From: Kudoa neothunni | Lineage: Eukaryota > Animalia > Cnidaria | Reading direction: 5' to 3' | Assembly: GCA_964304625.1 (NCBI GenBank) | Contig: OZ199840.1 | Span: 7,881,744-7,945,743 of the forward strand | Length of the DNA: 64,000 nucleotides | Shown here: positions 3,574 to 58,799 of the stretch, piece by piece | How positions within the stretch are numbered: position 1 is the first letter of the stretch | How the letters are laid out: every line of letters starts with the position of its first letter | Notes under the pieces: model-generated | The model's input: the letters and a program-made list of their open reading frames with translations, nothing else | Told to the model about the DNA's origin: nothing | Databases searched by the model: none | Made by a program: the position numbers and the translations under genes

Positions 3574-4636
3574 ATGGGGTCCAGATATCAGTACAGTTTG
3601 ACAGTGTTCAGGTTGCCATTAAAATATCAGTTCATCCACAATAAGTCCAAATGAATTTAGTTCATCTGGAAAGTTGGTTCAAATAGAATATGCTCTTCAA
3701 GCAGTATCGTCTGGTCGTCCCACTTTAGGAATAATAGGTTGGCATTTTTGTTACTTATCACAACTGTTTAACTCAGTTCTAACCTACTCTTATGATGAAT
3801 TAAGCAAATAATGGTGTTATTCTTGTGTCGGAGAAAAAGTTGCCTTCCATTCTTTATGACGAAAGCAGCGTGTCCAAGGTGAGTTGTTATGTCATTTGTA
3901 GTGAAGGATCTGATTTCTAATATTGTAATAGATTGAGAAAGTGTGCCCTCACATTGGAATGTCGTACAGTGGAATGAGTGCTGATTTTAGGTGGCATTTT
4001 TATTCTTAAATTCATCCAGAAATGATGCGTATTGTAATAATTTGGTGGTGTAGATTGTTGGTGGTACATGCGAGGAAAATTTCGGTCGAATACAAACTGA
4101 AATATGGCGAATATCCTACTCCAGTGTATATGGCACAGGAGATCGCCAAGGTTATGCAAGAATACACTCAGCAGAATGGAGTGCGCCCTTTTGGTGTGTC
4201 GATTCTTCTCAGTGGGTTCTACGCTGGAAAACCCTACCTGTTCCAATGTGACCCTAGTGTATTATATTTTCGGAGTTTTGGTTCTATTTGGTTGAACTGA
4301 CAATTTGAACTCAAATTAATAGGGTGCATATTTCCAATGGAAAGCCACTGCTCTCGGAAAAAATAGCACCAACCACAAAAATTTTTTGAAAAGAAGATCC
4401 GCCACAACCATTGCCGATATTGAAGATGCTGTACATATGGCAATTACTACGCTGAAAGTCTGATTTTTATAAAACTATATGGGAGTTCGAGCATTTTTTA
4501 ATTTCTATTATGTTAGGAATACAGCGAAGGAGTAATCAAAGAAGACAATATCCAGATATCTGTGTGTGATGCTGATGGATATAGGGGTCTTTCCAAGGCT
4601 AGAATCAAAGATTATCTTGATGCTGCTTCTATATAA
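3574..4636 (+). CDS. PSMA2: 20S proteasome subunit alpha type-2, 7 exons
   Basis: Spliced translation MGSRYQYSLTVFSSSGKLVQIEYAL...YTQQNGVRPFGVSIL...[21 protein letters not shown]...IEDAVHMAITTLKE...YLDAASI*. It carries the alpha-subunit N-terminal signature and alpha-2-type motifs, has six GT-AG introns, and shows no frameshift. Confidence 0.96.
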
Positions 4637-6870: not shown

Positions 6871-8907
6871 CTGCCATTTAAACTTTACCGCCGGTTAAGA
6901 ACCCCTGCCTTAGACAAATGTTTTCCAACGTGGGCCCACACTGGGAAAACAGATGGGGTGTGACGTAATTTTGGTGGGGAATGGAAATTTTTGAATGTTT
7001 AATAAACCACTCAGGTCTGGTGGGATGGGGAAAATCCTGAGTATTGGCATTGGTATGACATGAATAAAGATGAGGTAATTGTGCAGTATGACGTACTTTG
7101 ACGTCAATATCGCGATTTTTGATATCGCTCATTTATAAATGACGTTTAATATAATAAAAAATACAAAAGCCAATGAATAATTATATAAACGCTAATAATA
7201 ATACTTAACGTGTCCTTCACCAGGATAGAATCAGAATAGTTTGAATCTCAATCTTGCCTCATTTAGAACCATAATCTTTTTTTGATTATATCTAATATAA
7301 TATTGATTAATTTTGTATTTATATTATCTATTTTCGATTCATTAGCCTCCTATACAAGAAAGTCTTTCATTATGAAGGTTGGATTTACACGAGTATCATT
7401 TGATGCGGGTTTTTGGCGGAATAAAAAAATAAAGATGTTAATTTTTAAGTTCCATCGATAAATTAAGTTGAATCTGATCAAAAACATTTTAATTTTAACG
7501 ATAAAAGAAATATATATTAATTGCCTTCAAATTTTAAAGAGATGGGGGTTTTATTCCAAATTATCAACAGTTTAAGTAAAAAAATCAATAACTTTGAATG
7601 AGGTGGGGTAAAGGACATTTTTCAATAGAAGAAAAGGCGCGTTCAAAAAAAGAATAGGAAACACTGCACTAGACTGTGTCTACTTTCCTGATACTCCAGC
7701 AATAAGCATATTATTTCAAGGCGAAAACCCTACTACCGTATATTTCTTAGTAGTGTTAATTCATGAATCGTTTACCATGTATATTTTAGAAATAACATAT
7801 ATATAACACATTAATTTATATTTAATATTGTATAAATAGATAATTTAACATCTTTTTTCGAAATTGATGGAATTTTTCCCATCGATATCAAATAATAATA
7901 ATAATAATAATATATCAATGAAACAGTTCTAAACAATTATTTGTTCATTTAAGGTCCAGGTTCAATCGGTTTCTAGAAATATAAATTAGTGGCCTTTATA
8001 AATAATAGACTTGTAGAAGATTACTCCGCGATTTTTACTGTTTATTATTGTTGAGATATATGGGCGAGACAAGCATGTAATGGCTATCACGAGAATCATT
8101 ATGATGATTAATTTTCTAATAAAGTAATATTAGTTACCATAATAAACAATAACGAAGACCAACATTAGTTTTCAACAAATATTATCATATTTTGTATATT
8201 ATTAAAAATTATTATGCTGAATTATTTTAATTTTTTAATAAATAAATATCCCAATAATTTATTACATCTAATACATTCAGAAAACGATAAATTTTAGTTG
8301 AAAAATATAACTAGAATATTTCAGATTAACATAATGTGATTGGATTAACTTTCGTGAACATCGAATTACATTATCGGTAAAAAAATTTTCTTTCGAAAGA
8401 AATGAGATATTTTTAAATATAAATAGAAAAATATATTCGGTTAATTTATTAAATGGTTATTTCTTGCAAAATATAGACATAACACGTTCTAAGAAGGATT
8501 CAAATTTTGCTTATATAAAATAATGTTACTTTATCGGGAGAATAAAATATTATTGATTTTTTAGAAAAGTATAAAATATTTCGGTTAATGAAACAAGAAT
8601 TCTTTGAATGCAGGGAAAACGACACTTTTGAGTTGTAGTTGTAGGACACACCCTACTCAGGGCAGGAAAGGTTAAATAAACTACATTTTTCTCTATATTT
8701 TGTTTGCATACTTCTTAAATATTCCTCAATACAAAATACTATAATATTATGTAAAACAAAAATTAATAATTTAGAATTTCTTGGGAGAATATTATTGGAC
8801 GGCGGTAAGTTGTATTTGCCTGGTCGCTAATGAGTTAATGAGTATCTGGAGAGATATTCTACTTTTAGTAATTTTACTCTGGAAACTTCATTTTGAGGTG
8901 ATCAATA

Positions 8908-9199
8908 ATGTCTACTTGGGATAAAGTAACTTACTTTCAAGATTAACTATTGGCTACATTTGAATAGATTGGGGACCTCATAGGAGTTAGGGGCGGTGAC
9001 AAGGAAAAGAAAAAAAAGGAATTAATTTCTGGTCTCTCTATAGGTATTCTTGTATTGGTTGGGCTGGTGATTGGTGCTATCATATGTCTATACTACCGTC
9101 ATGGACAAGAGAAATCTCATAAGGTTACAAATTTAAAGTTCCAGAGTTTAACTGTTTATGTAGTCACCTAATAAAAACGTTTCTCCTGTGATAATGTAA
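8908..9199 (+). CDS. Single-pass membrane microprotein, paralog 1 (69 aa, 3 exons)
   Basis: Exons 8908-8925, 8968-9123 and 9164-9199 with phase-0 GT-AG introns of 42 and 40 nt. Protein MSTWDK|IGDLIGVRGGDKEKKKKELISGLSIGILVLVGLVIGAIICLYYRHGQEKSHK|SPNKNVSPVIM*. In-frame stop just upstream of the ATG. Clearly paralogous to 14797-15104. Confidence 0.75.
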
Positions 9200-10519
9200 A
9201 GTTTCATTATCGTTGAATATATTCAAAATCAAATTTTAAATGATCTTATTTTGATGAATTCTGTCAAAAATTATAAAACGTAAGTCAAAAACTTGGAATT
9301 TCACAATTTCATTTTTCCGATTTCCCTAACGGTTATACAATTTTAGGGCATTATAATCTTGAATCCACAATAATATATGGATCTAAAAAATTGACGAAAC
9401 TTTCTAGTTTATATTGAACAATTGATATTATTTATGTAGTATTTAATTTTATAATTTTGTACATAATTCGCGCATTCTGTTATACTCAGGTCAGTTTAGT
9501 GAAAAATATGAATTATAATTTATAAATTTATTTAAATTTTGTTATTAAACTAATTGTGTATGTATGGATGGGAAATAATTCGTAATAATAAGTACTTGGC
9601 TATTGAGACACCTTGATTACCACTAAAAAATTTACGTAGTCTGAGTTATAATTGACTTTTTTGTAATTAAAGCTTTTAAAAAATATATTAACCATGAATA
9701 TTTTGAATTTTACTATGAAATAATTTTTTAATTAACAATTAATCGCTTAAGTGGTCGATATTATGCATTTTGAAAAAATCGTTCATTATATTTCTATTGA
9801 ATGCGCAGAATAATTCATAAAACAATAATTATATTAAGAAATAAGATTAAGTGTAATATTACGACTTTATTCACTGTATAAATCTAAAAAAAGTTTACAA
9901 CAATGTTCTAAGAAATCTTGATTACGACAATCGTGTTTAAAAATACACTATACACTTCGTGCTTTTTGAGATCTATTAGACCCCGGGTTTTTATTGTCTC
10001 ATTAAAAGCGATAGTTTTTTTAAAGCTCGTATGTAAATTTGGAAAAAATTCTGTCGAATAATTTAGACACTATTGTAAAAATATTAAACGGTGACAATGT
10101 ACGAGGGGGGGATTAACGCATCACGATAGATTTAATTTCTTCTTGGGGTTATTTCGCCCCAATCTCGCGTGATAATAATCGTTTCTCATTCACAAAATAA
10201 ATTGATTTCAGGGGGATTTGATCATTTAATTAATATTTTAACATTTATAAACCCGAATGATTTAGTAGAAAACATATCAAATATTCAAATAAGTATCCTT
10301 AGTTACATACGCATATATATTTTTACAGCTTTCCGTTAAATAAACATCATATTATTAATCATAAGAATTAAAATAGTCATCCTAAATTAATGAAGTCGAC
10401 ATAATTAATAAATGGTTCAAGCGAATTCGAATGGCCCAACGCGTAACTTAAATTTTAATTGAGAGAAATCTCAAATTACTTGAGGTGAAATGATAGAAAA
10501 CCATCATCAAAGAATATTA

Positions 10520-12427
10520 ATTTCTATTATCTGCTGAGCAATCAACACAGACAAACTGAGAGTATTTCTCACAACAAAATCTTAAACAAATAATGCACGA
10601 ATTCTTAGTTTTTCGGTCATTGTTCCTTGAACATAGTGCACATCTTTTTCGGCAATTTGGCAGAGGAATAGGATAATTTTTTGGTAATAGTTAAGTTTTA
10701 ACCAGCATATCTTTTTCTAGCACAAATGGTTTGACAAATTCGTCCGCAAGTTTATCCACAAACTGTTCTCTCCTAATTTTGTTGTCATTAAATACGGCTT
10801 TGTAAAGAAAAAATGAATGTATTAGGCTGATATCTAAAATATTAAAAAAACAACGGTTGGCCAGCGTTTTGAGTATCTTCTGACACTAGTCGAAGCGAGA
10901 ACTCGGTCGATAATATCAACACCACCTTTATTTTTATTGTAATATGTAATATGTAATGACTTCAGGTTTTTTGCATTCATCAGAAGTCACATTTGTATCT
11001 ACTGAGGTAACCAAAAGTAAACTGACTTTTTTTGGGACGTAAGACAACATTTTTACTCGCGGAAAAGAAAAAGTGAACTACAAAGTTCTCTCGATTTATT
11101 TGCCTTCAATACTTCGGGGATGTCTCTTTTGTTTGGCCTGATCGTTCCGACCACAGTCATACCGAGGTTTAATAGTTTATTGGCGAGGGGTACTGATGTG
11201 AAATAATTATCAGCGACAATATTTCTATCACCATCTTTTAAATACGACACGAGGTCCAACAATATGTTTTCACCTAAACATTTTGCTCCTTTATTATTTT
11301 GTTTTCCAAGATAAATTGAGATATTGTGACAAAAGTTCATTGATGGGTCAACAAGCAAGAAAAATTTGATTCCACAAACAACCGGTTCAGAACGCATGTA
11401 ATGCTTTAAAGGGTATTTTTCCCTGAAAGCAACCAGTTGTTTATCAACGGTTAAATTGGAATAATTTCTTAATATTTTCAAATATTTCCTGTATTTGACA
11501 AAGTTCATCGGTTGGTTTTCTTTCGGCTCTGGTTGTATAATCGTTGAAATGGAGTGCTCTTATAATTTCAATAAATCTTCTCAAAGGCATGATACTTCTA
11601 AATATTTCCCTACCTTTATCCTTACTCCAAAGTGTTTTTAAAGACTCTAATTTTGATTTGAATATTGCCATATATATATATATATATATATATGAGCACA
11701 TCTATGTAGGCGCGGAATTCCACATTTGATAACTGTTTCCAAGATCGACTGTAGTGATATAAGCCAAAATTATTTGTATTCAGTAAAATGGTATCATAAA
11801 TGCCATCACCAACAAATATATCTAAGCAATCAGAAAATCCTTTTATTATATGTGTTTAATAATTAGTAACACCCGAGGCTTTGTTTAAAATATTTTCTTT
11901 GCACACTTTCGATGTTTTCGGGATTTCAATATTCCATATTACACCATTTTTTTCGGAGTATACATCAAGGGATTCAATATCATTATCATCAGATTCGAAA
12001 GAATTGGGCACGTTATCGCTACACTGTTCCATGTCAACGGATTTGCTGCAGTAACTTTCACAACTATCAGAATATACATCGTCAGATGCACTCATTTCTA
12101 CAGTCGTATGTCTCGGTATTCCTCGCAGATCATCGTCGTCATTTATTTCGTTATTTTCTCTTAATTTCTTCGTTAGAATCTGTTTTAATTTGAATATGAT
12201 TCATATGATAATTTTCACAGTTGTTTGCGCCAATAAAAACGTGGGGTCTAAAATACCCCAAAAGGCACAAAGTGTATAGAGTTTATTTATTTCCCTTGTA
12301 ACTTTAATATCTTTATAAAATAAATGATTATAATATTCATGTGTTCCTTGTAGGAGTATATACCGGATATAAACCTAATCTGATTCCAATAAGTATATAA
12401 AATTAGTAACACAAAATGCTCGGAAGG
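10520..12427 (-). mobile_element. piggyBac transposon relic (frameshifted transposase pseudogene)
   Basis: Fragments TVDKQLVAFR, GIKFFLLVD, VADNYFTS, GTIRPNKRDIP, KGGVD and RRYSKRWP. C-terminal Cys-rich domain CALC..CIIC..CVDC, acidic N-terminus, terminus GG|TTAA at 12426-12431, and GGGGTC..ACCCC palindrome near 12243. A (TA)n run interrupts the ORF near 11670. Confidence 0.9.
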
Positions 12428-13538
12428 TTAAAAGTGTTAGTATACATTATAAAATATAAATTGTTCCGACTATCATATAAATTATGTGTTATTCTCAGTA
12501 TTATAATAATTCGACGATGCCATAGAACAGTTTACACTCGGAACTTTACGCAATAACAATATCCTTTTTATAAAAGGGTTAATATAGTAATACAAAATTA
12601 TTACATCAGTTAAAATTAAACGCATATTTTATTTGTTCATTAGATAAAACATTTTACGCAATTAATTAGATATAAGAATTACTAAGTAGTCAGTTAAAGC
12701 TCACGAACGTTGAAGGCATCATGGTTAAAATATAGAATGGTGGCCGTAACCTAAATAAGCGATAACGAAAAAATTCGACAGTGCTGATTACGTTATTTTT
12801 GTAGCTTCTTAGTATTTGATGCAACATGACCCCGTATTTTATATTCTATTTGTTATATATGTTAGTTGCTGTAATCTATTTTATGTCTCGTAGCCCCTCA
12901 CAATCATCTTTACAGGCCATAACACTCAATCGCGTAAAACACCCATTACGTGTTCTAAAAGTTAAGTGTTACTGGTGATTTGGATGCGTTATCACAATTT
13001 CTTATCAACGATTGCCTATTATGAATTCCAGGAATCTATAAAAATAGTAACTGCATAATTTATAAACCATTAGGTGTTCAAATATAGAAAAAGTTTAAAG
13101 TTACAACAACAAAAATTATGGGTTAAAACACAGATATTCCTACCAGAAATTGTTTACATACATGTTACACAATTCTAATTTATAATTTTGGGATTAATGA
13201 TCTAACTATAATTTTTAGTCGTTAAATACGGCCGGTATTCTGCAATTTTCACGTTTTATTTACTCACAACACACTTTGGTGTGACCATATAATTCATTTT
13301 ATATCTATATACGAACAAGTAAGAATAATCCCTCCTACGACACAGAAATAATATAAAATTAATAACCTGGATACTATTAGAACAAAAATTAAATTTTAAC
13401 ACTTTATATTAATAAAGTAACTTAAGTGTGTTTGGAACTATTTCACTTTTAAATGATTTTTACCGGAATTTATGTAGCTGATATAAATAAGATCAATGTA
13501 GAATATTAATTATAAGGAAGCAAATACTAATCTTGTTG

Positions 13539-14300
13539 CTATCGGTAGAATAAGGCAGTTTCATCTACATTGTAAATAAGATTTTCAGAGTATATTTTAA
13601 AAAAATGTTCTGATTCTATTGATCTACTATGAAATAGTTTCAGGTGTAGCTTTAGCAGACTAGCTAATAAAATTTTGTTTTTTAATGTTGGACCTTTTTT
13701 TAAAACAACGAAACCCTCCACGAATTGCACATGAAGGTAAACCTTTTTCATTGACTAATTGATTTCTCTTGATGATTATCATGACGACTCCTACTACAAT
13801 TTTTCTGCATCGTGTCCGCCCAATCCACTCATATATATCTTCATCAACAGAATTAAATTATCCCGCATGCAGATAATTTCTATTTTTAGATTCTACAAAT
13901 ATTCATAGGTTTTGATTATTTTATTTTTCATCTCTAGAATGCCATTAGGAGTTGAGATAATAGATATTTTAAAATGTGATACAGTGGCAGTTTTTGGGTC
14001 ATTAGATTGAACACTTTCATAATAATTAGTAATATTGTACTCTTCGACAGTATATATAGCTTAGGAGTTTTTTGCATTGAATATTGACTTCACTAAATAA
14101 TAAACATGAAATAATCGAAAAAAATACGTGAAATTTGACAGTCACGTGACTGTTGGTTACTTTATTTAGCGACTTTTAAAATAATTTTTATAAAAATTTT
14201 GATTGGAATATTATAAGAAACATATTATACAAACAGTGACCAATCAATATTCTAACTAAATGGGTTTTTAAAAAGTGCGTGAAATTGGTTACTTACTGTA
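13539..14300 (-). mobile_element. pogo/Tigger transposase relic
   Basis: IYNVDETALFYR matches the first catalytic Asp motif of pogo/Tigger DDE transposases, preceded by a GPTLK CENP-B-type HTH remnant. A TA|CAGT terminus lies near 14300. Confidence 0.65.
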
Positions 14301-14796
14301 TTACTAATGAGGAATCTTGTGAATCATCTGAATATTGATTTACTATCTATATTATTTCCTGACCGAAAGCTGATCTTGAAACATTGTATAATAACATCTG
14401 AATATAATACTACCTGGTGAATACACAATTTAATACACTCTTCGATTTTAATTATTCATGTATTCTATTTAGTAGAGTCCATTTTTCATTTTATCTCATA
14501 CTCTCCTTAGATTAAAAAGCTTATGAGATTATTTATTTAAATATTTTTACCACTATTCTGTTTTAACTGAATTTTTATGATTCAAAGGTGTTCTTATAAT
14601 ACAATTAACATAAATTTATAATTTTCGAATGTCTTCAATATTCGAACTATTTGGAAAAATTATTATCTACAGTTAATACTGATTATTCATGAGTCAATCA
14701 GAGCCGAAATTATTACTGACTAATCTGTCGACATCAATAAATACCGTGCCAGTTTTCGTGGTTTCACACAAGAAACATTTATTTGTATAATCAATT

Positions 14797-15104
14797 ATGT
14801 CTACTTGGGATCAAGTAACTAGTTTTCAAAGTGAATTATAGTAATTATGACATTAGATTGGCGACCTCTTTGGGTTTAGAGGTAATAAAGAAGAAGTAAA
14901 AAAAAGTCAAATAATCGCTGGTGTATCTATCGCAGTCTTTGTGTTGGTTGGACTAGCAATAGGTGCTTTCATATATATACACTATCGGAAAAAAGGGAAT
15001 AACAATACGGTTACCAAATTATTCTAGTAAAATATAATTAACAATCTGTGTAGGTACAACAAAGAAGCGCTCCTCCATCGAAATCAAGAACCGGTTACTA
15101 CTAA
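14797..15104 (+). CDS. Single-pass membrane microprotein, paralog 2 (73 aa, 3 exons)
   Basis: Exons 14797-14814, 14857-15009 and 15054-15104 with phase-0 introns of 42 and 44 nt. Protein MSTWDQ|IGDLFGFRGNKEEVKKSQIIAGVSIAVFVLVGLAIGAFIYIHYRKKGNNNT|VQQRSAPPSKSRTGYY*. Confidence 0.75.
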
Positions 15105-15469
15105 CAAAAGTTAAAATTTTCACGACATTTTGAACCTTATTGAAAATTATAAAAAAAATTATTACTTTAATTATATAATATTTTGCGCCAATTCTTAATA
15201 CAAATAATATTATGTATCAATTTTATTTAATTAATCTGCTCTTTTTCATTATGTAATAGCTTATAAAATTAACTAATTGATTAAAAAAGTTTATTTTGAC
15301 TGATTTATTGTTTTGACTTGTATTATTTGATTATTTTATTCATGAATTTAAAAAAATACGGTAAAACTAGATTTATAACTCTGGGAATCGACTAATTAAA
15401 TAACGGGAATTTTCATACAGTCAAACTTCTTCCCTTTAGTAGAAGAATAATTTATGAAGGTCTAGTATA

Positions 15470-16545
15470 ATGCAATTAAAAAATTTAATGCCTTAAACCG
15501 CAAATTTTGAGGAAATATACTGCGTGAAGGGACACCCGACTCTCAATGAAACTAATTATTCATCAACTAAAGACGAACAGAAGGAATTAGACACATCGGC
15601 AAAATACTTTTCCACCTATTGAAAATTTCGGTTAACGGAAAAACCTTTTCGACCCCTCACCGTAAACTCTTGTCTCGCAGTCATCAAAGTGAACATTTCT
15701 ATTTAATTGGATGAATCTATAAAGCAACATGATTCTACGAAGTATATCATGCCCTTTATTCAAGCTCCATTATTGCTTAAGATGCTCCATTTTAGACTTA
15801 AAGATAGGCTTATATACAATAATTCCCACGTATACTTTAAATTGCATTATATTCAGATTTTGCCTTTTAATTCCGTAATGAAAGCACAAAATTTGTTAGT
15901 GTGAATAATGGCAGAATTGAAAAATTCATCATAAAAAAATAGAAAAACTATCCGATAAATTTCAAATTCGGGATGTTACAAATGCAGTAGGACTTAGTGG
16001 TTTGTTTAAGCTTGGTTTCTTTTCTGATTTTTGTATTCGAAAGCACAACTGAAGACCATAACACATTGTTTTTGTCCCTATACGTGTAAGTGACTCCAAA
16101 ATCATCTGAACAATCATAAAGAGATTAAGAGAAACATACCTCAATAATATCTTCAATTTCACTGCGATCGGAATCATAGCTCGTTAGAAAACTATCATAT
16201 AACTCTTCCATTTCTAGAGGCCGGAAACATCAACTTTGATTTTTCTCAATATTTAATGGATATACCCTTTCGATATTAAAATACTTTATTTTTATAATTT
16301 TATAAATGTTTCTGTGAAATAAAAACGTGGGGTCCTCCTGGACCAGAAAATGGTTTGGTGTAAGTATTTGATATAAAATGCTAGCAAACAAATAATTCTT
16401 AATTTTAAAATTAAATTATGAATATATAACAACTTTAACCGAATAGTGATTGTATCCAGCTAATTTAACTTTTTCAGTGAGCAGTGAATTGAGATTAAAA
16501 TCAGCCTGAGGTCCATTTTGGCTTCGAAAATGCTTGGAGTGTTAA
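15470..16545 (-). mobile_element. piggyBac relic (5' half, decayed)
   Basis: Minus strand near 15480-15575 reads SLVDE*LVSLRVGCPFTQYISSKFAV*GIKF, matching the piggyBac [28 protein letters not shown] motif. GGGGTCC..GGACC palindrome near 16329 and a TTAA end near 16545. Confidence 0.7.
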
Positions 16546-16599
16546 AGATAACTTACTAAATGACAGATAACTTCGTTCAGTATATTTTGTATGGTTTCC

Positions 16600-16900
16600 C
16601 TCGACAGTTTAAGTAGATAAACTTCAAAAAGTTTTTTGCATAACATTGTTAATGACATTGCAAAATTGTTAGCCACTTGCGGAAACAGCAAATATTTTTC
16701 CTTCTTTCAGAATAGGGTGTGGTAATTTTTATTTATTTTTTTTGTTGTAATTTTTTTATGATATGGCACTACGTTGATTCATAGATGTGCAACGATCTTG
16801 CTACGTCGTGTTTTATCATGCTGTGCTTAATGGCATTATTTATGGAATACCATAGGGGTGTTTCATTATACACAAAATCAAATTTTTTTACATGATATCA
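16600..16900 (-). mobile_element. Possible second pogo-like fragment
   Basis: Minus-strand remnants RKWLT (AS.GWL-like) and NETPLWYS (DETPLWF-like). Very decayed. Confidence 0.3.
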
Positions 16901-19240
16901 TAAACCTTGTAAATAAGATTAGATAATTTTGGTTTAACTCATTTACTTAATATCATATCATATCTTTACGAATTATACAATTTAAAATTTAATTTAAACT
17001 ATTTAAATTATAAATATAAACATTGTATTATAACTCACGAATTAAATTGATATATAAATATTATGAAAAATGTGTGTAAACCATTTAAATAGTATAGCTT
17101 AATTAAAATTTTTGAAATTTATATTATAATACGATTATTTTATAATTTAAAATGACCATTTCCCTTAACTTAGAAGAAGTCACTTGATAGTTCTTTTTGT
17201 CAGATATACCAGGAATTAATTGTTAAATATCGTGTTTTCTCAGATGTAGGGCAGCTTTTGCATTTTGTTTAGTTTAATAAGGATCATTAGTTCTTATTTT
17301 TATTAAAGATAGGTCTTAAATTTGTAACTGAAAATGCTCTCTAAATATTATTTAGCTCATATAGCAGAATTAAATAGGACTTTCTAGATAGAAAAAATAA
17401 TATGTATGAAAGAAACAAGATAATTTGATAAAAATATAATCTGTTCTTTAAAAAAAGAAGACAATATGATAATCCAATCACCAAATAAACATTTTTAATG
17501 AATATTTGACCTTTATAATTTGAATTATTGTTAACTACTAAATAAAATTTCATTTTTAGATATATTTTGTTATAAAATTCAGAATATCCGAATTTTGACT
17601 ACTTTAATGGGGTTTATACTTAAAACTAGATCAAAAATACCGTCAGATATTATTTTCAGTGTAGCTCATACAATTGGAGAAACACAGTAGGTTAGGTGCG
17701 TTAAAATCCTCATTGGGATTTCAAAAATTTCTGCGTGCAAAATAAGTCCTCAATAGAGAATTAATAGAATTTGTATTTTTAATTCGTTAATAAAAAAGTT
17801 GAGAATATAGTTTAGGTTTTAATTTTAAATTAATAAAAGGAATTTTCGTCGTACTCTATCTAACCAAGCATGCTTTTCAGGGTACTCACTCAACTCCCCA
17901 TAAAATCATGTAATAAAATACATTTATAAGCTTAATATTTATTTTAATATTTCAAAAAAAATTTGAAGTTAGATTGAATGATTCAACGGGTTGCTAGAGT
18001 AAGTTTTTGCGATTCGATCGGTGAATAGTGCACATATTCCATCTATTCAACGTTAAATATGTAATAGCATCACAATTTCATTTAATATTAAGCTATTTCT
18101 AAAACGAAATTTTCTCTGATGATTTTTCTAGTTGCCATATTTCGTTTGTAAACTAAAGCAACGATATTGTAAGTAAGTAAGTATAGTTTAGGTTATTTAT
18201 AGTGATTTGCGTTAATTATCACAAATATCAAGCTTTAGAAGAAACGAAATCACTCATTGTATCATTAGGAAATAATATAATGTATTATTAAATCAAAATT
18301 GATGTGAATGTATTATTAAATGAAATAAAAGTTTTTCTAAGCGGATTTTCACTTGAATGACAACAGTAGACAAACAAAGATGCTCTTATTCATTTCGACT
18401 GCTGACAGTTCCTTGTTAGGATTGATATTAGAGTGTTAAGATATTTTAGCTTTTTTATTATTTCAAGTCTAATGACAAATATACCCGTTAATGTCTTTAC
18501 GTGCTTTGATTTCTTTTTATATGCAAAAAAAGAGTAACATTATTAAGGTTTATTTACAGAAATCGAGATTTATACAACACATTGTTTAATGTGCTGTTAA
18601 TACTTTAAGCATTAAATCTTTGATATAATATTTTGAGTTCATTTTTAACTGTCGATTATAGAAGTAATGAATGGATATGAATAATTAATAATGTGACCAG
18701 ACGTTATGGCGCTACGGTATTCAATTGGAGAGATTCGTTATTAAGTATTACATTAGGATTTTACTAATTCTCACATATTTCATCCTCTGCCATTCACTTT
18801 GTATATACTGCCACATGATCACACTTTATTATATGCATCACTGCTATTTGGCAACATAATTTGATGCAGATTCGTAGATATTACACAAATATGTACCCTC
18901 ATGATTAGATGATACATTTTTACTTTTGTTAATATCCATTATATATTAAGAATTGTAATGTTATTTTATTATAATTTCATGGAAAATATGCTAATCAAAT
19001 ATAACAATAATAAATAATTATATTTGATTAATAATATGAGTAGTTTAAAATAAACAGTAACAATTCCGACTGCTTAAAACTATTTTATTCAACTCACCAT
19101 GCAATAAAAAATCTGCTGTCGAAATTTATACTTCATAAGCCCATTAGAATGAGGAATTATTACTGATTACTCTATCGGCTTTTGTGAGAGTTATATAATA
19201 ATTAATCATACCACTCGAGAACATTTAGTTTGGATGGACA

Positions 19241-19528
19241 ATGTCAGATATTACTGATAGGGTGACCAGTTTTCCGAATGAACCATAGTAAATTTCACCT
19301 TAGATACTTGAAATTGTAGTGTCTATGGGAATTAAAGAGACTGATACAGGAACAGCTACAATGATTGGCCTATCTATAGGAACCGCTTTGATTGCGTTAT
19401 TTCTAGGTGTTATTTTCAAATATTGTCTTAAAAAGAGAAGCAGCAATAGGGTTACTAATTTATCCTATGAATGATTATTAATTCTATAGGTAAGCGAAAT
19501 TCAGAATATTCCTTTGGAAGAACGATAA
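19241..19528 (+). CDS. Single-pass membrane microprotein, paralog 3 (68 aa, 3 exons, more diverged)
   Basis: Exons 19241-19261, 19304-19450 and 19490-19528 with phase-0 introns of 42 and 39 nt. Protein MSDITDR|ILEIVVSMGIKETDTGTATMIGLSIGTALIALFLGVIFKYCLKKRSSNR|VSEIQNIPLEER*. Shares GLSIG, the basic post-TM patch and the GTTAC intron-2 donor with paralogs 1 and 2. Confidence 0.7.
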
Positions 19529-20149
19529 AATCATCTTTATTATCTTAAAAAATTGTGAGGTAAAATTTTACAATCATTGTGGTGTATATCGAAAATTTAA
19601 ATATTAATTTTTTGTCTCATTTAGAAAACTAATTTCTAGGGATCTCTAACTGTATGAATGCTATATGAAAAAATGACGCTTTTTAGATTTTATTATAGAT
19701 GTATTTTACGTTTTTCGTATGTGCAAAATAATGGATTTAATTATCAATCAATATTTTAAACAGAGTAAAAATTCATTTAAAGTGTAAATATCGGATGTAT
19801 TAATGTATTAGAGAGTCGACGAATTTTTATTAAAATTGTCATTTATTTTATTAGGATGCTTAACTTTTATTGTTTACTGAGTAACTATTATTTTTAATGG
19901 TAATATTCATTGATTGCCATTATCATAATTTATGTATAATAGGTGGGAATAAAGTATTATAAAAATATCTATATTTATTGTTTTAAACGTTTAGATAATT
20001 TAAAATTACATGGGAATCAATTTTTATTGAGATATTTTGCAAATACGTGATACATGATATTCGAAGAGAAAACTTTTTTAGGCGTTTAGTTATAATTATT
20101 ATAAAGGGATTGTACACTAATTATTCATAACGAGGTGTAGGTGTAGATA

Positions 20150-23415: not shown

Positions 23416-25260
23416 ATGATTCTAAATTTCGCTCAACATTTATTAACTATTCCCATAGTTAATAACTCATATCAACTGAAAAAAAATGAATGCGCCACGT
23501 CACCCAAAATGGTTTTAAAAAGGAAATCATGTTCACTCAAGAGTCTGTTTGCAAATACCTCATTTCACAGCCAAAAAATAATATTCAGCGTACATATTTC
23601 CACTTGTAATAAAAAATTAATTTAATATTTAGGAAAACAAATTGAAAATATTAGAAAAACGAAATTATATTGTATCAGAATTAATTGAATCAGAAAAGAA
23701 TTATTTGACATTTCTAATCGAATCCCTCTTGGTAATAATTTATAAAATAAATATTTAAGGAAGCATCTCGAAAATTTAGATATATCGAAGATGCTTTGTT
23801 CAGAACTACATTCTTCCTATCAATACTATACATAAAATATTCTTCTGGCTTGAAGAAATTATCAACTTGTCCAGATGCATCTTGCGTGATATCGATAAAA
23901 CACATGCCTGGAAAGTTTATGCCAATAACAAAGACAGCTTCTCGCAATACACCAAATATCCCATGTGCTATCAAAACTCTATCGCTCAAATAGATATCTG
24001 TAGGCGGATGTATGCTGGTTTTGACGAGTTGATCGTTTCACTGAGTAAAACCCCTGGGGTCTGTTGTGGGTTGTCTTTGGAATCAATTTTATTGATGCCG
24101 ATTCAAAGAATCCCAAGGTAATAGACCATACAAAACTATTAAAAGAGGGGTTTGTATTAAGAGATTTCCTCTGTGAAAAATGAGTAAATAAATAAATACA
24201 TAATCTTCTATTTATTAGATATGAGCTACTTTTTAAAAAACTCTCAAAAACATTTCAGGATGGAGACCGTGAGAGAAGTGAAATTAGAGGTGTGATTACT
24301 AATCTGAGATCCCTTTTTACTAAATATATTTTAGATATGAAAAAGTTTTTCAAAACACTCAACAGAAAAATCAACACAAACGTAACTAGCTCGATTACCT
24401 TTTGCCAGCCCGGAACCAAGTCCATTCATAAACACGCTCGAAAAAAGCAACTTCACATGATTGGTAAAGTGAAAAAGTTTATAGTTGACTCAAAAATATT
24501 CAAAGGTTATCTATCAAAATTCTTAAAATATTTAATTTACATATAGAGAATGAATTAATTCACGCAGAAGTGGTTTTCAAGGTGAATAAATACCCTCATT
24601 AATTTTATTATATTTCAATTTTAATTTGGCTATATTATAACTATTCCAGTTAGAGGTTTACACCAAAAGCTAAATTTATTTTTTAAAATATTTCATTCAT
24701 TGGCAACTAATCTAATCTTTTTTAGTATTTGACCAATGGAAAAACTCAAAAAATATACTTTATCGTATTCAAAGACATTATTGTTGAAATCTCTTCGCTC
24801 AACCTGTAATATTATGATAACTTAGCAGTTATAGAGGTTTTTCATTAGGAAATCATCCAGTGGAATAATGTATTCAATGCCCGATTCCAATATTACATTA
24901 TACTCCAGTAAAAATATAAGTTGTATAGATATTGGAGTTGACCATCTTCATATATGTTCTGGTGGTGGAATTTTTCAGGTATTCAATTTCTGTTGCAGTT
25001 ATTCCTTAGTTAAAATTTTTTAGATCACAAACAATATCATTAGTAGTTATTACTTTTGTCCATGTAACGAAAGGGCAAAAGAAATAGTACGAGTCATCGA
25101 AACATCCAAGTTAATGTAATTAAATATAAAATTTTAATGATTATGATTTATTTATATTTGTTTAGAAAATTCAACCAATACTACAACGACAGAAAGTCGT
25201 ATTCAAGTTGTAAAAGTGATTCAGCCGTCCATTCGAATTAGCCCTTATTCTTTAACCTTG
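23416..25260 (+). CDS. Dbl-homology (DH) Rho guanine nucleotide exchange factor, multi-exon; 3' end approximate
   Basis: DH motifs KRNYIVSELIESEKNYLTFL, IHKIFFWLEEIINLSRCIL and GLSLESILLMPIQRIPR|YELLFKKL are joined by short GT-AG introns. Downstream exons, probably the PH region, were not fully resolved. Confidence 0.8.
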
Positions 25261-32232: not shown

Positions 32233-34504
32233 CCTTCAACGCCCCCAATTTTTTTTCGTTTGACAAAAATATATTTACTTAATTATACGTTATTTATTAA
32301 TTTTATAAAATTTTAAAATTTTTCGAAGCGTTTATCCTTATTCTTTAAGATCAAATAACGTTGTTCACTAGGGTGAACATTGGGCGCCTGAGCGAAAATA
32401 ACAATTTATTTTATCAGAAAATAATTTTTTCCAATTTATTCAGTTATTATGATATAAATAAAAACAATTTTTGTCTTTTAGAATACAGCGTGGAGCGTTA
32501 CATTTTTTACACACAAATTGTGTATTCCGTTGACAGAGTCGACATCTACTTTTCGAAGAAACTATTTCAGGGTAGTGTCCAACATTGTCAAACCTGATAG
32601 ATTTTAACAAATCGAAATTTTTATTCTTTGAGGTGTAATTTGGAATCAATTTGTTCGAGTTATCAATAGAAAGGCGTCCACGCTTCGTTGCTGTAACGGA
32701 TTTTTTTAAGATTATCAAATCTTCGGTCAATGAATCAGTGAAAGGGAGCAAATCTAATATATCTCTATTAGGGATGCGCTTATCTTTTAAATTTAAGCGA
32801 TAAATGAGTCAAGCGTTGACTATGCCTGTATTCAGTCCCCGGAAGAATATCCGCATATAACATTTACGACCTTTATGATTTTAAATTATACAGCGCTATC
32901 AACATGTCGGGTAGGTCAACTCCATCCATATTTTTGTTGTATTCGGCTACAACGATCCGGACAAGAAATTGACAGTAATTTCTTCAATATTCGATCAAAT
33001 CTCTTCACTTGGTCGATAGGCTATAGCGACGAATGCGGATCCAACGATAAAGTAACGATGGTGCCATCACACCATTGGGTAATGGCAATACCCTTGTTGA
33101 TATCGTGAATAACTTTCATAGGATCCACGTTCTTTTTTAATTCCTTTTGAGGAGCAAGAGGACAACCTTTGATCCTATCTCTCCTAATGGCCCCAACGGA
33201 ATATATGTTTCTCTTCTTCAAATATAGATACAGGTCTATATATGTAAAGAAGTTGTCATAGTACAATAAGAATGTTTCACAAGTTGGAGAGATCTTCGAC
33301 AATTTGATGACAAAATCGCCTGAAACTAAGCCACACCTATGGTTAACGACAGGAGGTTTTCCATCGTACACTATACCGCTATCGCCACATCTGGCAAACA
33401 TTTTAAATCCCCATTTGTTGGGCTTCTTTGGAAGATATTGTTTAGATTTTGCATTTTCTCTTAAAGGGGATCATCCGCGCGTCAACCGAGTGATATCTTC
33501 CTGGTTTTACCTTCGAGCAGGCAGATCGCAAATTGGCATCAACTACAATGTTTTGGTTGTTGTTAAAATGGAGATATCGTAATAGTTGTTCAAAACGATT
33601 CCTTGATAAACAGTCAGGTACTTTTAGATAGTTCAAATATTTTCTCCAAAAAGAACGATAACGAGACATTTTAACAATACCCCTTTAGGATTAACACTCC
33701 AAGAAACTTCTCCATTTCAGAGGAATCTGTTTTCAAATTGTCTCCGCATTGGGTTTCATATAAGTTTGATTTATTACATATTAATTTTAATCAGCTGTTG
33801 ACTAAAGAACAGCTTGAAATAATCATACGGACGATGTAATTCAACAGAGACTTCAAAATCTAGTTCAAGTATAACTCCGTTGGGTAATTTTTAACTAAGG
33901 TCCTTTTTTAAACCGGCTGAAAATTGAATCTATAGCATCAGAATCTTCTGACGAATCTTGGTCAACAACCAATGTTTCTGATACATAGTTATTTTCAGAA
34001 GATATATCAGGCTCTATAACATCAACATCTGGTATCTCAACTATGTCAGTGATTGATCTGACCGTTTCGCAGCTTTGAAATATTCAAATCGTGATCCATC
34101 CCCCTCTCGGCGTGATTTTTGGACACGCACCCCAATGGTCACCCTAGTGAACACATGATTTTGTGTTTATAACTTTTTATATTTTTATAATTGGAATTTT
34201 TACATATAATATATACTATCTTTAAGCTTACACATACAACATATTTTTTTTCTGGTTCTATTACTTTAAAATTGTTCTGGTTTTTAGGGTAAAAAATAAT
34301 GCAATTTTAAAAATGCCAAGTAACGAAAAGTTCCATTCTACAAAAAGTAGTATATTACATTATCTGTTAAAAATATATTAAAATAATTATATACGTAAGA
34401 ATTTTAAAGTATTTTTATACTTAATAAATATAATTTTTAAATATATATATATATTGTCAAAATAAGTCGCTGTTTCATCCTAGTGAACCTCGGGCATGAA
34501 AGAG
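32233..34504 (-). mobile_element. Near full-length piggyBac (PGBD2/PGBD3-like clade) with dead transposase
   Basis: TTAA flanks at 32229 and 34505. Termini CCTTCAACGCCC / GGGCATGAAAGAG. Subterminal inverted repeat GTTCACTAGGGTGAACA near 32364 versus copies near 34140 and 34475. ORF pieces SRNRFEQLLRYLHF, ARCGDSGIVYD, YYDNFFT, GAIRRDRIKGCPL and C-terminal CRLC..CKKC..C..CF..YH. Confidence 0.9.
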
Positions 34505-37260: not shown

Positions 37261-37289
37261 GCATATCTATAATGTCCTTTAGTCCTTTA

Positions 37290-37768
37290 CTAGAGCTAAT
37301 TCCCAGCTTTGCCTGGTACTATATATTATGATACTATGTATTATGATACTATGTATTATGTATTACGTACTATGTATTACGTACTATGTATTATGTATTA
37401 CGTACTATGTATTATGTATTACGTACTATGTATTATGTATTACGTACTATGTATTATGTATTACGTACTATGTATTATGTATTACGTACTATGTATTATG
37501 TATTACGTACTACTGTATTATGTATTACGTACTATGTATTATGTATTACGTACTATGTATTATGTACTATGTATTACGTACTATGTATTATGTACTATGT
37601 ATTACGTACTATGTATTATGTACTATGTATTATGTATTACGTACTATGTATTTACGTACTATGTATTATGTATTACGTACTATGTATTACGTACTATGTA
37701 TTTATGTAATGGAAAATTTTAATTTTTACTTTTATTTTTATTTTTGAATGAAGAAATTCTACGTAAGA
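37290..37768 (-). mobile_element. Probable non-autonomous Helitron carrying the satellite
   Basis: Minus-strand 3' end CCAGGCAAAGCTGG (hairpin), then about 10 nt, then CTAG|T at 37293-37289. A candidate A|TC 5' end lies at 37769/37768. Confidence 0.4.
37327..37708. repeat. Heptamer tandem satellite (TATGTAT / TACGTAC / TATGTAC) with a 21-bp higher-order unit
   Basis: About 380 bp of directly visible 7-bp units, with the central part (TATGTAT TATGTAT TACGTAC)n. Confidence 0.97.
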
Positions 37769-41777: not shown

Positions 41778-43516
41778 TCAGTTGAGGGTGGAGGCCAGGA
41801 TGGCAGCTCCTGTACCTGAACCATCACGGACTAGTACAATGGAAGTCTCAACATCCGGCAAAAGTTCTTTAAGATAGCCCAAAACACAATCACGTATGTA
41901 GTGATTCTTCTGAATGACACTGCCATCAGCTGAAATGACAGCCTTTTTTCTACCCATGTATTTGATGATTGCGCTCAAACCGGAAGCAGCTATGAGAGAA
42001 ACTCTCTCACACAATGCTTTCGCCACAATGAGATCAATACAATTTTCTACGTTGAAAATTTCGCCATTTACCATATTGTTGGCTCTCCTGCGGTTACACA
42101 TTATATATAACAAAATACAACAAACACTACTCGGCTAACTCGGACAGTTGTTCTCCGGTCACATTGTCTATATCGACACCAACAGTGTATCCCAACGATT
42201 GGACTTCTTTCATGATAATCTTGTAGATGTCAACAATGTACAATCCAGATATCATCTTTTCGTAGCTGAAATAATCAATTATTATCGATTAGAAAATAAA
42301 AAGTGAATCGGGATTACATCTGTTCACCTGGGCGTATTGATTTTTCGTCAATTTCAATTTCGTACTTGTTGCGAAGATGGTGGATTTCTTTGTTGCTACC
42401 GAATGCGCCGAATTCGGTATTCAAAATCACTCCTTTGTGTGAGCTACCGTTGGTATGGGTGGAGTGTCCGTTGGCAGCAGCGGGTACAGAAACTAAATGT
42501 TCGTTCTCCTCCATGTAGCAGGCGTTGCATCCAGTGCCCATGATGAATCCAATACAGACATTGTCGTGGGTTTGTGCTCCGCATAACATGGTACCGACAG
42601 TATCATTGAGAAGGGCAACATTTTTGCATGTTAGCCCAGGTCGCTTTTTAATCGCTGTCAACAAGAGTTTGGATACATCTTGCCCCACAACTCCTTTCAC
42701 ATCGAAACCCTTTGTCCAATGGATTAAATTGCCAGATGTTAATGAGAGTTGATCGACTGGGAAGGAGAAAGTGAATCCCACTGTTTTCAAGTCCACAACT
42801 TTATCATGAATGTAATGTCTTGAGCATCTCTCCAACACACTTGCAATCAGGTCAAAAAGTTGTTCCGCGTCACCTGTAAGAATCTCCGAAGAGATACTCT
42901 CATACTCTATGTGTTTTTCCATTTGTCCGTTAGTAAACCTAAAATACAACGACAATTAATGTTTATCAATGCTTTATGTGATAAAGATAAATATCGAGTT
43001 GGTTCTCAAATCTCATAATCATTGAGATTAAACTTCACTGAGCTTTTAAAATCTGCATTACATGATGGCAAGAACTCGAAGATTGGATCCCCCTAGATCG
43101 ATCCCAAAACGTAGCCCATTCTGCTTTCTATTTGGCAGATTGTGCACATGTGTGTTGATCATTTTGAGTGTTGATGGTTTTCCCTTATGCTTGTCCCGCA
43201 TGGCCTTACCCATCCTGTCAGCAAGTTCGATTCCCTCACTCAGTGGCATTTTAATTTGTTTGATAATGTCATACAATTTTGGATACGATTCCTAAAAAAA
43301 ATAACTTATATTAGTTTTCCAATTGGATAAAATCTCAATTAGTTGTGTGTATTTGATCCAGAAAATGGATCATTATATGAGGGTAAGAGTGGTTAAATGC
43401 AAGTGAACCCCACTGACAAGCAATATAAATCATCATCAAAATAACAACATTTCAATGATTAATCTAATGTGTGGATCAAAAAAAACTACCTTTATTATTT
43501 GCTTATGTTCCGTCAT
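41778..43516 (-). CDS. HK: Hexokinase (single about 45 kDa unit), about 5 exons
   Basis: Motifs DLGGSNLRV, GFTFSFP, WTKGF, NDTVGT, IMGTGCNACY, NTEFGAFG, YEKMISGLY, ADGSV and DGSGTGAA. Exons join in frame. The first mini-exon MTEHKQIIK (43516-43490) is tentative. Confidence 0.95.
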
Positions 43517-56920: not shown

Positions 56921-58799
56921 ACTTAGTGGTTTCCCTAATAGGATCACCTGATGGCACCTAATGTTAATCGTTTGTTATCTTAATCTCAATTTAGTTTTAG
57001 AAATTTTATTATCCCAATGATTCAATATAAAGTCAAGTTGATTTTATCTTTGAAGAGAATTGCATTAATGTGAAAAGCATTAACAGCATAGACGAATAAA
57101 TAATAAAATATTCTCAACAGATAATAATTAATCGTTGTTTAATAATATTCAAACCCCCACTAATCCAAATTTAGATTGATGTCTCACCCGAATTCACATA
57201 TGAACTCTTAATTTAGATGACTGATTAGCAACATTTGTTTCGTTTTAGTTACTAACTTATTTGCCAAAGAGATACTTGAATCTAGCTTAAATACTAAGCC
57301 AACTTCTTAGGTTAACACCTCTAGAGCCCATGCTGACACATTTATTATTAAAAACATTTGTCATATACTTTGTATCATTATATCTAGCAAAATGTAAAAA
57401 CATCGGCAAACTTTATAAATAGTTCCACTCTTTAATTGTCGTCTTAAGAGATAAAAATCCGCTGTGGGAAGATATCAGCTAGATGATAATCTCCTCGCGG
57501 AATTTGATTCACGTCAGGTAATGATTATCATGTAAAATTATTGACAGGTTCAGCGAAAATAAATAAATAAACATGAGTCGAATCAGTCATCGTCAGACAT
57601 AATTGAGAATCTTCGATACGTCTCCAAATTGATGGTGCTGTGAATTATTCTCACAAAATATACACAACTATTTATTTAATCTATATTGATTTCATTATTT
57701 ATTAAATTTTATTTTTTCTTAACGTTTATGATTAAATCGTAGATGTTAATTATTAAAGAGACAATTTTCAAATAAAACAACAAGTTAACTTTTATTCATA
57801 ATTATAAGTTAATAAATTTCCATATATTATAATCCCAAACATTTTCCAGCATCTAGTCGGAAACTTGGTTCTAACGTGAACACAAACTTATTTCATACCA
57901 ACGTCTTTCAAATTACAATAGGTAACCATATTTACGCAATTTTCGAAAACACTACACACCTTTATATATACATTTAAATGAGTAGTATTTTTGATTTTAT
58001 TTTGGACAGTTTTGTGAATTTTTTAATTTATCAGAATTTAAAAAGGTATAAAATAGCCAAAGTAAAATGCACTTGATTAATCAGTTTACATAATATTTTT
58101 GGGTGAGTATTGTTTATGATTGGTGTTTTTATTCTCAATAGTTGACCAAATTTTGTTGGAAATAGATATATAACGATTAGTATAAAATTATAATGTAATA
58201 AAATAGCCAGGAACTAGTGAGGGGCGCAAACTACGACTACGTTACAATTTAAAATGCTGTAAATTAACATATGTAATGGAATTTTAAAATAGAATGAAGA
58301 ATTATATTAGAACTTCCAGTACACGTTGATGAAAATTATCTAGTAAATTTTATTATTAGAAATCTGGGTTCTGGATCAACAAATTTACAATCGGATTTAA
58401 TTTGATGAAAAATATCTAAAAAGTTATAACTAAACATTAAATCAATGGTTGGTTCCTTAACTTACGAAAGTATAATATTAAGGAAGTAAATTTTTTGGAC
58501 GAAGCTTCCACCATTTATTTAATTACCACTTTTGGCTGGAAAGTGGAGACAATTCAAACCATAAACCATGTGACAATATTGAAAAATGATAAATATATAT
58601 TTTTTATTTTAAGTCAATGTTTATTACATAAGTCACATCCAAAGGACGATATCGACAAAATTCAGATTGTATATATGCGCGCAAAAACTACGTAAAAGTG
58701 GTTACCTACTAAAGTACAGAATAATTTCAATTATATCAAAAAATCCATTAGTAACTAAGTCTAATTCTAAAAACTCTTGTCTTTTTGTTAATATTTAAA

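Follow-up and report, generated by a model that had tools for sequence, protein, structure and literature searches.

Within a window of 64,000 nt from Kudoa neothunni (the whole stretch of DNA that was analysed) we propose, with a probability of roughly 0.6, that three loci, termed p1, p2 and p3 and starting with ATG codons at 8908, 14797 and 19241, represent old tandem duplicates of a real protein-coding gene for a membrane protein of approximately 60–70 residues. All three are found on the same (+) strand and all are unannotated. Each copy would comprise its own conserved 5′ flank, an ATG exon of 6–7 codons and a constrained 42-nt phase-0 intron, followed by a second exon whose product would begin with a short, charged N-terminal stretch and continue with a single Gly-rich transmembrane (TM) helix and then a basic patch beside the membrane. 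The 3′ end may be formed by a second tiny intron and a tail exon (3-exon model) or by direct translation beyond the patch (2-exon model). The analysis was performed by sequence computation, in which the exons were searched one by one and joined models were used only for the calculation of lengths and charges. The window is AT-rich (GC 25–37% per 2 kb) and eukaryotic. The features of the three copies are as follows.

8808..8907, + strand: p1 5′ flank (promoter or 5′ untranslated region), homologous to the p2 flank; the blastn block begins at 8863, and the 100 nt align to p2 with z = 2.8
8908..8925, + strand: p1 exon 1, MSTWDK; 17/18 nt are the same as in p2 exon 1 and the ATG is retained
8926..8967, + strand: p1 intron 1, GTAACT..ATAG; 42 nt, phase 0, with in-frame TAA and TAG and hence unable to code
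8968..9123, + strand: p1 exon 2 with the predicted TM helix LISGLSIGILVLVGLVIGAIICLYY; 52 codons, open; Kyte-Doolittle 19-residue maximum 2.97; AF2 helix with the best pLDDT at residues 21–40
9124..9163, + strand: p1 putative intron 2, GTTAC..GTAG; 40 nt, with TTAAC 12 nt before the TAG; otherwise coding for VTNLKFQSLTVYV, with the frame running to a stop at 9169–9171
9164..9199, + strand: p1 putative tail exon SPNKNVSPVIM plus stop (3-exon model); an AATAAA at 9170–9175 overlaps the stop of the 2-exon model
14708..14730, + strand: p2 upstream 23-nt motif AATTATTACTGACTAATCTGTCG, common to p3 at a similar distance from the ATG; exact only at p2 and p3 in the 40-Mb assembly
14797..14814, + strand: p2 exon 1, MSTWDQ; ATG exon of 6 codons
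14815..14856, + strand: p2 intron 1, GTAACT..TTAG; 42 nt, 31/42 identical to p3 intron 1, holds a TGA
14857..15009, + strand: p2 exon 2 with the predicted TM helix IIAGVSIAVFVLVGLAIGAFIYI; 51 codons, open
15010..15053, + strand: p2 putative intron 2; 44 nt, otherwise coding for VTKLF and then a stop at 15025–15027
15054..15104, + strand: p2 putative tail exon VQQRSAPPSKSRTGYY plus stop; GC approximately 43–45% against 23% in the putative intron
19155..19177, + strand: p3 upstream 23-nt motif AATTATTACTGATTACTCTATCG, an exact match to the p2 motif
19241..19261, + strand: p3 exon 1, MSDITDR; ATG exon of 7 codons
19262..19303, + strand: p3 intron 1, GTGACC..TTAG; 42 nt
19304..19450, + strand: p3 exon 2 with the predicted TM helix TGTATMIGLSIGTALIALFLGVIF; 49 codons, open
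19451..19489, + strand: p3 putative intron 2; 39 nt, otherwise coding for VTNLSYE and then a stop at 19472–19474
19490..19528, + strand: p3 putative tail exon VSEIQNIPLEER plus stop (3-exon model)

The exon-intron architecture is common to the three copies. The ATG opens six codons in p1 and p2 and seven in p3, and is followed by an intron of exactly 42 nt (GT..TAG, phase 0) that carries in-frame stops. Exon 2 is open for 52, 51 and 49 codons (p1, p2 and p3) up to a conserved GGTTAC, and its translation consists in all copies of a charged N-terminal stretch, a single Gly-rich TM helix and a basic patch. The putative intron 2 (40, 44 and 39 nt) has the form GTTAC..TAG in phase 0, and the putative tails behind it are open reading frames (ORFs) of 11, 16 and 12 codons. 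An earlier note on this DNA had described three same-strand loci that share a short exon 1, a 42-nt intron, a TM exon and basic residues, and both coordinates and structure agree with that description. The TM motif it gave, I.G.SI...LVGL.IGA, is likewise present, except that SI and LVGL are separated by four free positions where the note has three.

In-frame stops are located 2–5 codons 5′ of each ATG (two codons in p1), the TM frame is closed directly upstream by the TAG of the intron 1 acceptor in all copies, and p1 and p2 possess no Met ahead of the TM helix. Because stops precede both frames, the ATG exon together with the 42-nt intron is the only simple route to translate the TM frame, and because intron 1 itself holds in-frame stops it is needed to join the ATG to this frame. 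None of the three copies has lost its ATG, its frame or the GT and TAG that bound intron 1. Reading through intron 1 with a ciliate-type genetic code was ruled out: the p2 intron contains a TGA, and the genes for proteasome alpha-2 (PSMA2) and hexokinase in the window read normally in the standard code. DNA contigs of an independent run, X1, agree with positions 13800–19750: no base substitutions are listed, and the only differences are two short indels (17406 and 17450) between p2 and p3. The p2–p3 stretch is therefore not an assembly artefact, keeping in mind that X1 may derive from the source sample.

To judge whether the frames behave as coding sequence, the ratio of non-synonymous to synonymous substitutions (dN/dS, omega) was calculated according to NG86 and amounts to 0.39 for p1–p2, 0.40 for p1–p3 and 0.50 for p2–p3, at dS of about 0.9–1.7. 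In a simulation one copy was given the observed number of random substitutions and scored for an open frame and for omega. Only 8%, 3% and 5.5% of the simulated copies stayed open (pairs in the same order), and among these open copies an omega as low as observed occurred in 1/241, 2/90 and 4/165 cases. The p1–p2 differences are distributed 20/10/27 over codon positions 1/2/3, the second position being the most conserved. All indels in exons 1 and 2 are 3 nt long, those in the flanks 1, 2, 4 and 6 nt, and the antisense frames are closed. An omega of about 1.2 is reached only in the N-terminal segment of the p1–p3 pair, which comprises 19 codons. From this pattern we conclude that the TM exon appears to be under purifying selection as a protein; the copies show all three marks of a protein-coding gene under selection, as the frame is retained, dN/dS lies below 1 and the exon indels come in multiples of 3 nt. 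This supports the proposal that p1–p3 are paralogues which encode small single-pass membrane proteins and are maintained by selection. The p1–p2 value, which the earlier note had proposed to compute as a check, is not near 1. The contrast drawn earlier between intact frames and splice sites despite divergence and broken neighbouring transposons also holds, given the 3–8% of open simulated copies and the fragmentary piggyBac-like ORFs. The word “diversifying”, by which the family had been characterized, does not fit: an overall omega of 0.4–0.5 points to purifying or relaxed selection, with no sign of positive selection.

The relationship among the copies is clearest for p1 and p2, which share 71% identity over 242 nt (8863–9098 against 14753–14987, blastn, E 8e-21); when the whole assembly was searched in six frames, the p2 TM exon matched p1 at E 1.7e-10. 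Protein search did not recover p3. This copy is tied to the family by non-coding features, namely the 42-nt intron, the 23-nt upstream motif and the sequence GGTTACnAAwTTA after the basic patch. The identity of intron 1 between p2 and p3 is reached by 0/300 shuffles, and the conservation of intron 1 (and of the upstream motif) between these two copies is at least equal to that of the coding exon. If similarity is counted region by region, all pairs exceed the shuffles from about −100 through putative intron 2, after which the signal fades. The 23-nt motif AATTATTACTGAYTAMTCTRTCG is situated at −89 of the p2 ATG and −86 of the p3 ATG, is absent from p1 and has no other exact match in the 40 Mb; it may act as a promoter element of this family. 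A single hit of this 23-mer with three mismatches (L040) was rejected, there being no gene behind it. For a duplication of whole units a tblastx comparison of the inter-gene spacers gave no indication beyond shared piggyBac debris.

Remnants of piggyBac-type transposases (PF13843) lie fragmented at 11053–11701 (−), 15479–16082 and 33024–33401 (−), between the paralogues and elsewhere. The first remnant is bracketed by an inverted repeat (9938–9996 and 12231–12289, 59 nt, 81% identical), which may mark an element of approximately 2.35 kb.

Several points weigh against the proposal of three real genes. The protein identity of p3 to the other copies is only 30%, and one must keep in mind that in short hydrophobic proteins composition inflates the similarity of TM segments. 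The flank charges of p1 favor neither orientation, and function as well as topology rest on general rules only. The gene models are predictions from the sequence. Finally, a search for PSMA2 exons in the collection used for comparison yielded nothing above 60% identity, so that this collection holds no Kudoa relatives and orthologues of the family are outside its reach.

The splice sites were judged in the context of what is usual for the organism. In myxozoans the 5′ splice site is reported to retain only “GTa” and the 3′ site hardly anything besides AG (PMC13644364). For K. neothunni an assembly of 40.2 Mb with an N50 of 12 Mb, a GC content of 30.4% and a median intron of 49 nt was published (PMC12239612). 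As a local reference we rebuilt ten introns in the window genes for PSMA2, hexokinase and glycogen branching enzyme (GBE). They measure 43–123 nt, 7/10 acceptors are TAG, and the bases after GT are arbitrary, as seen in the donors GTTGCC, GTTGGC, GTGAGT, GTGGCA, GTATTA and GTCTGA of PSMA2 and in GTAATG, GTAATC, GTAGTG and GTAACC. Judged from the sequence only, the six proposed family introns are all GT..TAG and 39–44 nt long, compared to 43–123 nt in the reference and 49 nt for the published median. A 42-nt GTAAC..TAG intron is, by these standards, an ordinary candidate in K. neothunni; by the same token, GT and TAG at a spacing of about 40 nt readily occur there by chance.

The PSMA2 gene is complete (3575–4636, +), with six introns of 49–67 nt and a spliced model of 234 intact residues, and serves as the local reference for the degenerate splice signals of this genome. 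Hexokinase (41781–43291, −) matches Pfam Hexokinase_1 and _2, has mammalian HK1 and HK2 as best solved relatives and contains introns of 123, 52 and 43 nt; as mammalian hexokinases are its best matches, the DNA is that of an animal. In the GBE gene (approximately 54300–56970, −; CBM_48 exon 56209–56790) one intron starts with GTAACC, showing that GTAAC donors occur outside the family. A tandem repeat at 37283–37747 (+) is open in three frames (YYVLCIT-type units) and produces spurious ORFs of 120–154 residues.

For the 3′ end the earlier note had assumed a third exon. We regard a second tiny intron followed by a tail exon of 11–16 codons as a candidate structure with close to even odds; a GTTAC..TAG second intron is plausible, is not established, and a 2-exon reading with VT(N/K)L at its end fits the sequence about as well. 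According to this alternative, which we consider tentative and worth serious weight, there is no intron 2. Translation would continue through GGTTAC, ending in VTNLKFQSLTVYVVT (p1), VTKLF (p2) or VTNLSYE (p3) with a stop after 5–15 codons, and the tails would be 3′ untranslated region. The read-through indeed yields a conserved V-T-(N/K)-L whose Thr codon is synonymous in three ways (ACA, ACC, ACT), and in p1 the AATAAA overlaps its stop. Myxozoan donors need little past GT, so that the needs of splicing leave the strict conservation of GGTTACnAAwTTA unexplained; on the other side, the non-coding 5′ end of intron 1 is equally conserved, and such conservation accordingly does not require coding.

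The segment between donor and TAG speaks rather for an intron. A branch-like TTAAC or TTAAT is found 8–12 nt before the conserved TAG in 3/3 copies, and the GC content, at 21–28% in the putative intron, goes up once more behind the TAG. Only this segment of 40/44/39 nt contains indels whose length is not a multiple of three; the following 33 nt are in gapless register. In addition, other small TM genes of this genome (L005 and L006) have a short intron directly after the basic patch.

The tails themselves give an ambiguous answer. Their lengths of 11, 16 and 12 codons are approximately those expected from AT-rich random sequence, and no significant gapped similarity was found when their alignments were compared to shuffles (z 0.7–1.9), in agreement with untranslated sequence and with the earlier statement that the tail exons are unrelated. 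This statement is too strong for the first 33 nt after the TAG, which retain a weak gapless similarity of 43/99 identities compared to 26.5 ± 4.2 in shuffles. The value was reached by 1/5000 shuffles and by 29/5000 random genomic triples, and a Pro occupies tail codon 8 in 3/3 copies.

Two further loci of the assembly G000 with such an intron may be described here. L006 (2171–2990; G000:C3 approximately 6,076,670–6,077,490) is a tandem pair of small TM genes in which one exon holds ATG and TM segment, the basic residues are followed immediately by a short intron, and the tail exon encodes PPxY motifs (PPPY, PPSY). L005 (1122–1710; G000:C3 approximately 9,697,150–9,697,730) is a type I membrane-protein gene with a Cys-rich (VWC-like) exon, a TM exon ending in CKRCRKSRDIM, an intron of about 37 nt (GTATAT..TGTAG) and a tail exon.

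A more fundamental objection to a coding family would be that the copies are relics, pseudogenised fragments or a conserved non-coding element, such as a regulatory module or a non-coding RNA, and that their open frames are fortuitous. This we consider improbable. It could draw on the missing expression signal: three raw-read RNA runs, presumably labelled as host fish, gave 0 reads on 13800–19750, a count which is no measure of expression as there are too few Kudoa RNA reads (PMC12239612). It could also draw on the want of any homologue among 1.84 billion proteins and on the conservation of intron 1 and the upstream motif, which between p2 and p3 equals or exceeds that of the coding exon. Against it stand the frame retention and an omega well below 1 in every pair, exon indels of 3 nt only and the second codon position as the most conserved one in p1–p2.

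A hint towards a function at the RNA level arises from a weak conserved long-range pairing of two GTnAC sites. The start of intron 1 (GUAACU or GUGACC) is reverse-complementary to the GGUUAC after the basic patch, leading to a helix of 6 bp in 3/3 copies with one-sided changes only, and both sites are conserved well past the usual needs of myxozoan splice sites. The pairing sites predicted by RNAalifold are the following.

8926–8931/9123–9129, 14815–14820/15009–15015 and 19262–19268/19450–19456, + strand: pairing sites in p1, p2 and p3

At −10.5 kcal/mol over 283 columns the consensus fold is weak, the long-range helix shows no two-sided compensation, and no Rfam family matches in the window.

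It was also considered that the copies form an array of variable cassettes, in which units of promoter, exon 1 and TM exon, each ending in the conserved GGTTAC donor, would be joined by splicing across several kb to common exons further downstream, with a same-strand RhoGEF gene about 4 kb past p3 as candidate. The phase-0 GT at the same spot after the basic patch in 3/3 units, the own conserved 5′ flank of each unit and the barely conserved local tails would agree with such an arrangement, and the RhoGEF exon lacks the first ~30 profile positions, indicating that further 5′ exons exist. However, introns of 4–15 kb would be needed in a genome with a median of 49 nt (43–123 nt in the window), a constant exon was not found, each donor is followed after approximately 40 nt by a TAG with a conserved branch-like motif, and weak similarity persists beyond that TAG, all of which makes the array very doubtful. 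The arrays of clustered protocadherins and UGT1A are comparable in their tandem units with an own promoter each and in a conserved donor just after the TM and juxtamembrane region. They differ from p1–p3, where no constant exons were found, a plausible local acceptor lies 40 nt off and the introns are tiny; the analogy applies to this minority reading only. The RhoGEF exon itself (23780–24118, +) encodes a DH domain (PF00621, E 5e-12, profile positions 30–143) and is located 4.2 kb downstream of p3.

Least probable of all, and very much so, is an RNA switch in which the GUAAC/GGUUAC pairing and the length-locked, stop-carrying 42-nt in-frame intron would couple or gate the removal of both introns and thereby choose between a peptide of 12–15 residues (intron retained) and the membrane protein.

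Assuming a coding family, the predicted product has 62–73 residues with a single helix at approximately 22–49, no signal peptide and Kyte-Doolittle maxima of 2.4–3.0. The AF2 model is a single long helix with a mean pLDDT of 63, a modest confidence that peaks over the TM segment. Under both gene models 15–26 residues follow the TM segment. As this would leave the TM segment in the ribosomal tunnel at termination, insertion is expected to be post-translational and would probably proceed in this way. The C-terminal flank carries a charge of +3 in p1, +4 in p2 and +4/+5 in p3, the N-terminal flank +3, +2 and −1. The earlier note had proposed an N-out (type III) topology, which the charge balance fits for p2 and p3 and leaves ambiguous for p1 with +3 on both flanks. 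By the positive-inside rule, a general rule, p2 and p3 should sit N-out/C-in. The short distance of 15–26 residues between TM segment and C-terminus and the missing signal peptide are features of tail anchors, whose TM segment lies within about 30 residues of the C-terminus, yet the more positive C-terminal flank of p2 and p3 points to the opposite orientation.

A further mechanistic aspect concerns the helix surface. Two small-xxx-small pairs are found on one helix face (GLSIG ... GLVIG), and G22, S24 and G36 are invariant in p1–p3. This small-residue face (G/A-xxx-G/A twice) may pack on itself or on a partner membrane protein. Our best guess is that the product could be a small bitopic accessory subunit or adaptor whose TM face binds itself or another membrane protein.

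The family appears to be confined to three copies. No further ones were found in the window (nhmmer, hmmsearch), nor in the 40-Mb assembly by protein, profile and DNA searches. A word-based protein search gave no candidates for homologues of the p2 TM exon, and a HMMER profile run exhaustively against 1.84 billion representative proteins gave no homologue. Six profile hits with E 1e-5 to 8e-4 (e.g. P0002 and P0006) are TM segments of unrelated proteins and were dismissed as compositional. The sole weak profile hit in the assembly (L005, E 0.07) is the TM exon of the Cys-rich type I protein and not a family member. In Pfam the TM exons found only sub-threshold TM look-alikes. The earlier claim of an undescribed, lineage-specific family, for which a genome-wide search for extra copies had been proposed, is borne out in so far as no relative is detectable besides p1–p3; the power of detection is low for a mostly hydrophobic protein of 56 residues in a fast-evolving lineage, and “lineage-specific” means no more than that no relative is detectable.

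The motif at the 5′ end of intron 1, GTRACYWRYTTTCMR, occurs 35 times in the genome compared to 12 times for a control. This threefold excess is due to dispersed repeats and not to new members. One repeat family carries cagtagGTAACCTATTTTCCGtagtgaccg near position 1500 of L011, L013, L016, L017, L020, L021 and L024 (assembly G000), a second one carries GTGACCAATTTTCCAcattttt..cccgaggagattacg (L008, L022 and L028), and both together account for the excess.

K. neothunni was annotated from protein hints, as too few RNA reads could be mapped (PMC12239612). Missed short genes are to be expected from an annotation made in this way. As myxozoan genomes were annotated from protein hints alone, their repertoires (approximately 5,300 genes reported) systematically lack short lineage-specific genes, and a triplicated family of membrane proteins of about 65 residues would represent a concrete example of this hidden gene fraction. 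The other small TM arrays of the genome suggest that this much-reduced parasite may repeatedly have evolved single-pass microproteins. The family could also provide a small natural test case for the recognition of very short, nearly consensus-free introns, with an intron that is better conserved than its exon. At present its value is that of an annotation lead and not of a discovery, concerning a modest lineage-restricted orphan family.

In comparison to known small membrane proteins no family membership could be assigned. The roles suggested in the earlier note, as FXYD- or regulin-like regulators of pumps or channels, TM adaptors or proteins of the parasite surface or host interface, are speculative. 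For FXYD (PF02038) there was no match of the three TM exons even at E ≤ 10 and no F-x-Y-D in the translations. DWORF (PF22030), tested for membership in the regulins, matches p1 only, with 13.3 bits against a cut-off of 27; PMP1_2 (PF08114) matches p2 with 18.6 bits against 22.3, with no hit for p1 and p3; and ETRAMP (PF09716) reaches 15.2 and 16.3 bits against 29.1, the N-terminal hydrophobic signal being absent. Feature hits in the ESM Atlas (syndecan, glycophorin-C/SMAGP, stannin) scored 0.81–0.87, below the lead threshold of 0.9.

With the malarial ETRAMP proteins and the micro-exon genes of schistosomes the family shares that it is specific to a parasite lineage, small and tandem, with a charged stretch next to the TM segment and one exon of 18–21 nt, a multiple of 3. 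ETRAMP possesses a signal peptide, which p1–p3 lack, and micro-exon genes combine a signal peptide with long series of symmetric micro-exons, compared to one micro-exon here. The TM-PPxY pair of L006 is likewise tandem, unannotated and single-pass with approximately 60–100 amino acids, and has a short intron directly behind its TM segment and basic residues, with the cytosolic tail encoded by the next exon. Its sequence is not similar, a single exon holds ATG and TM segment, and clear PPxY motifs occur in the tails, whereas p1–p3 have a separate micro-exon 1, a Gly-rich TM helix and no PPxY. To glycophorin-A-type GxxxG helices the resemblance is one of motif only, and such motifs are common by chance in TM helices. 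FXYD proteins belong to the type I class and some of them carry a signal peptide, while p1–p3 have neither the FXYD motif nor a known pump partner; regulins are anchored by the C-terminal tail with a cytosolic N-terminus, while the charge balance of p2 and p3 favors N-out. Still, p1–p3 are similar to FXYD proteins, phospholamban, sarcolipin, DWORF and PMP1/PMP2 in size (approximately 35–110 amino acids), in the combination of one TM helix with a basic cytosolic stretch and no enzymatic domain, and in the small-residue face of the TM helix.

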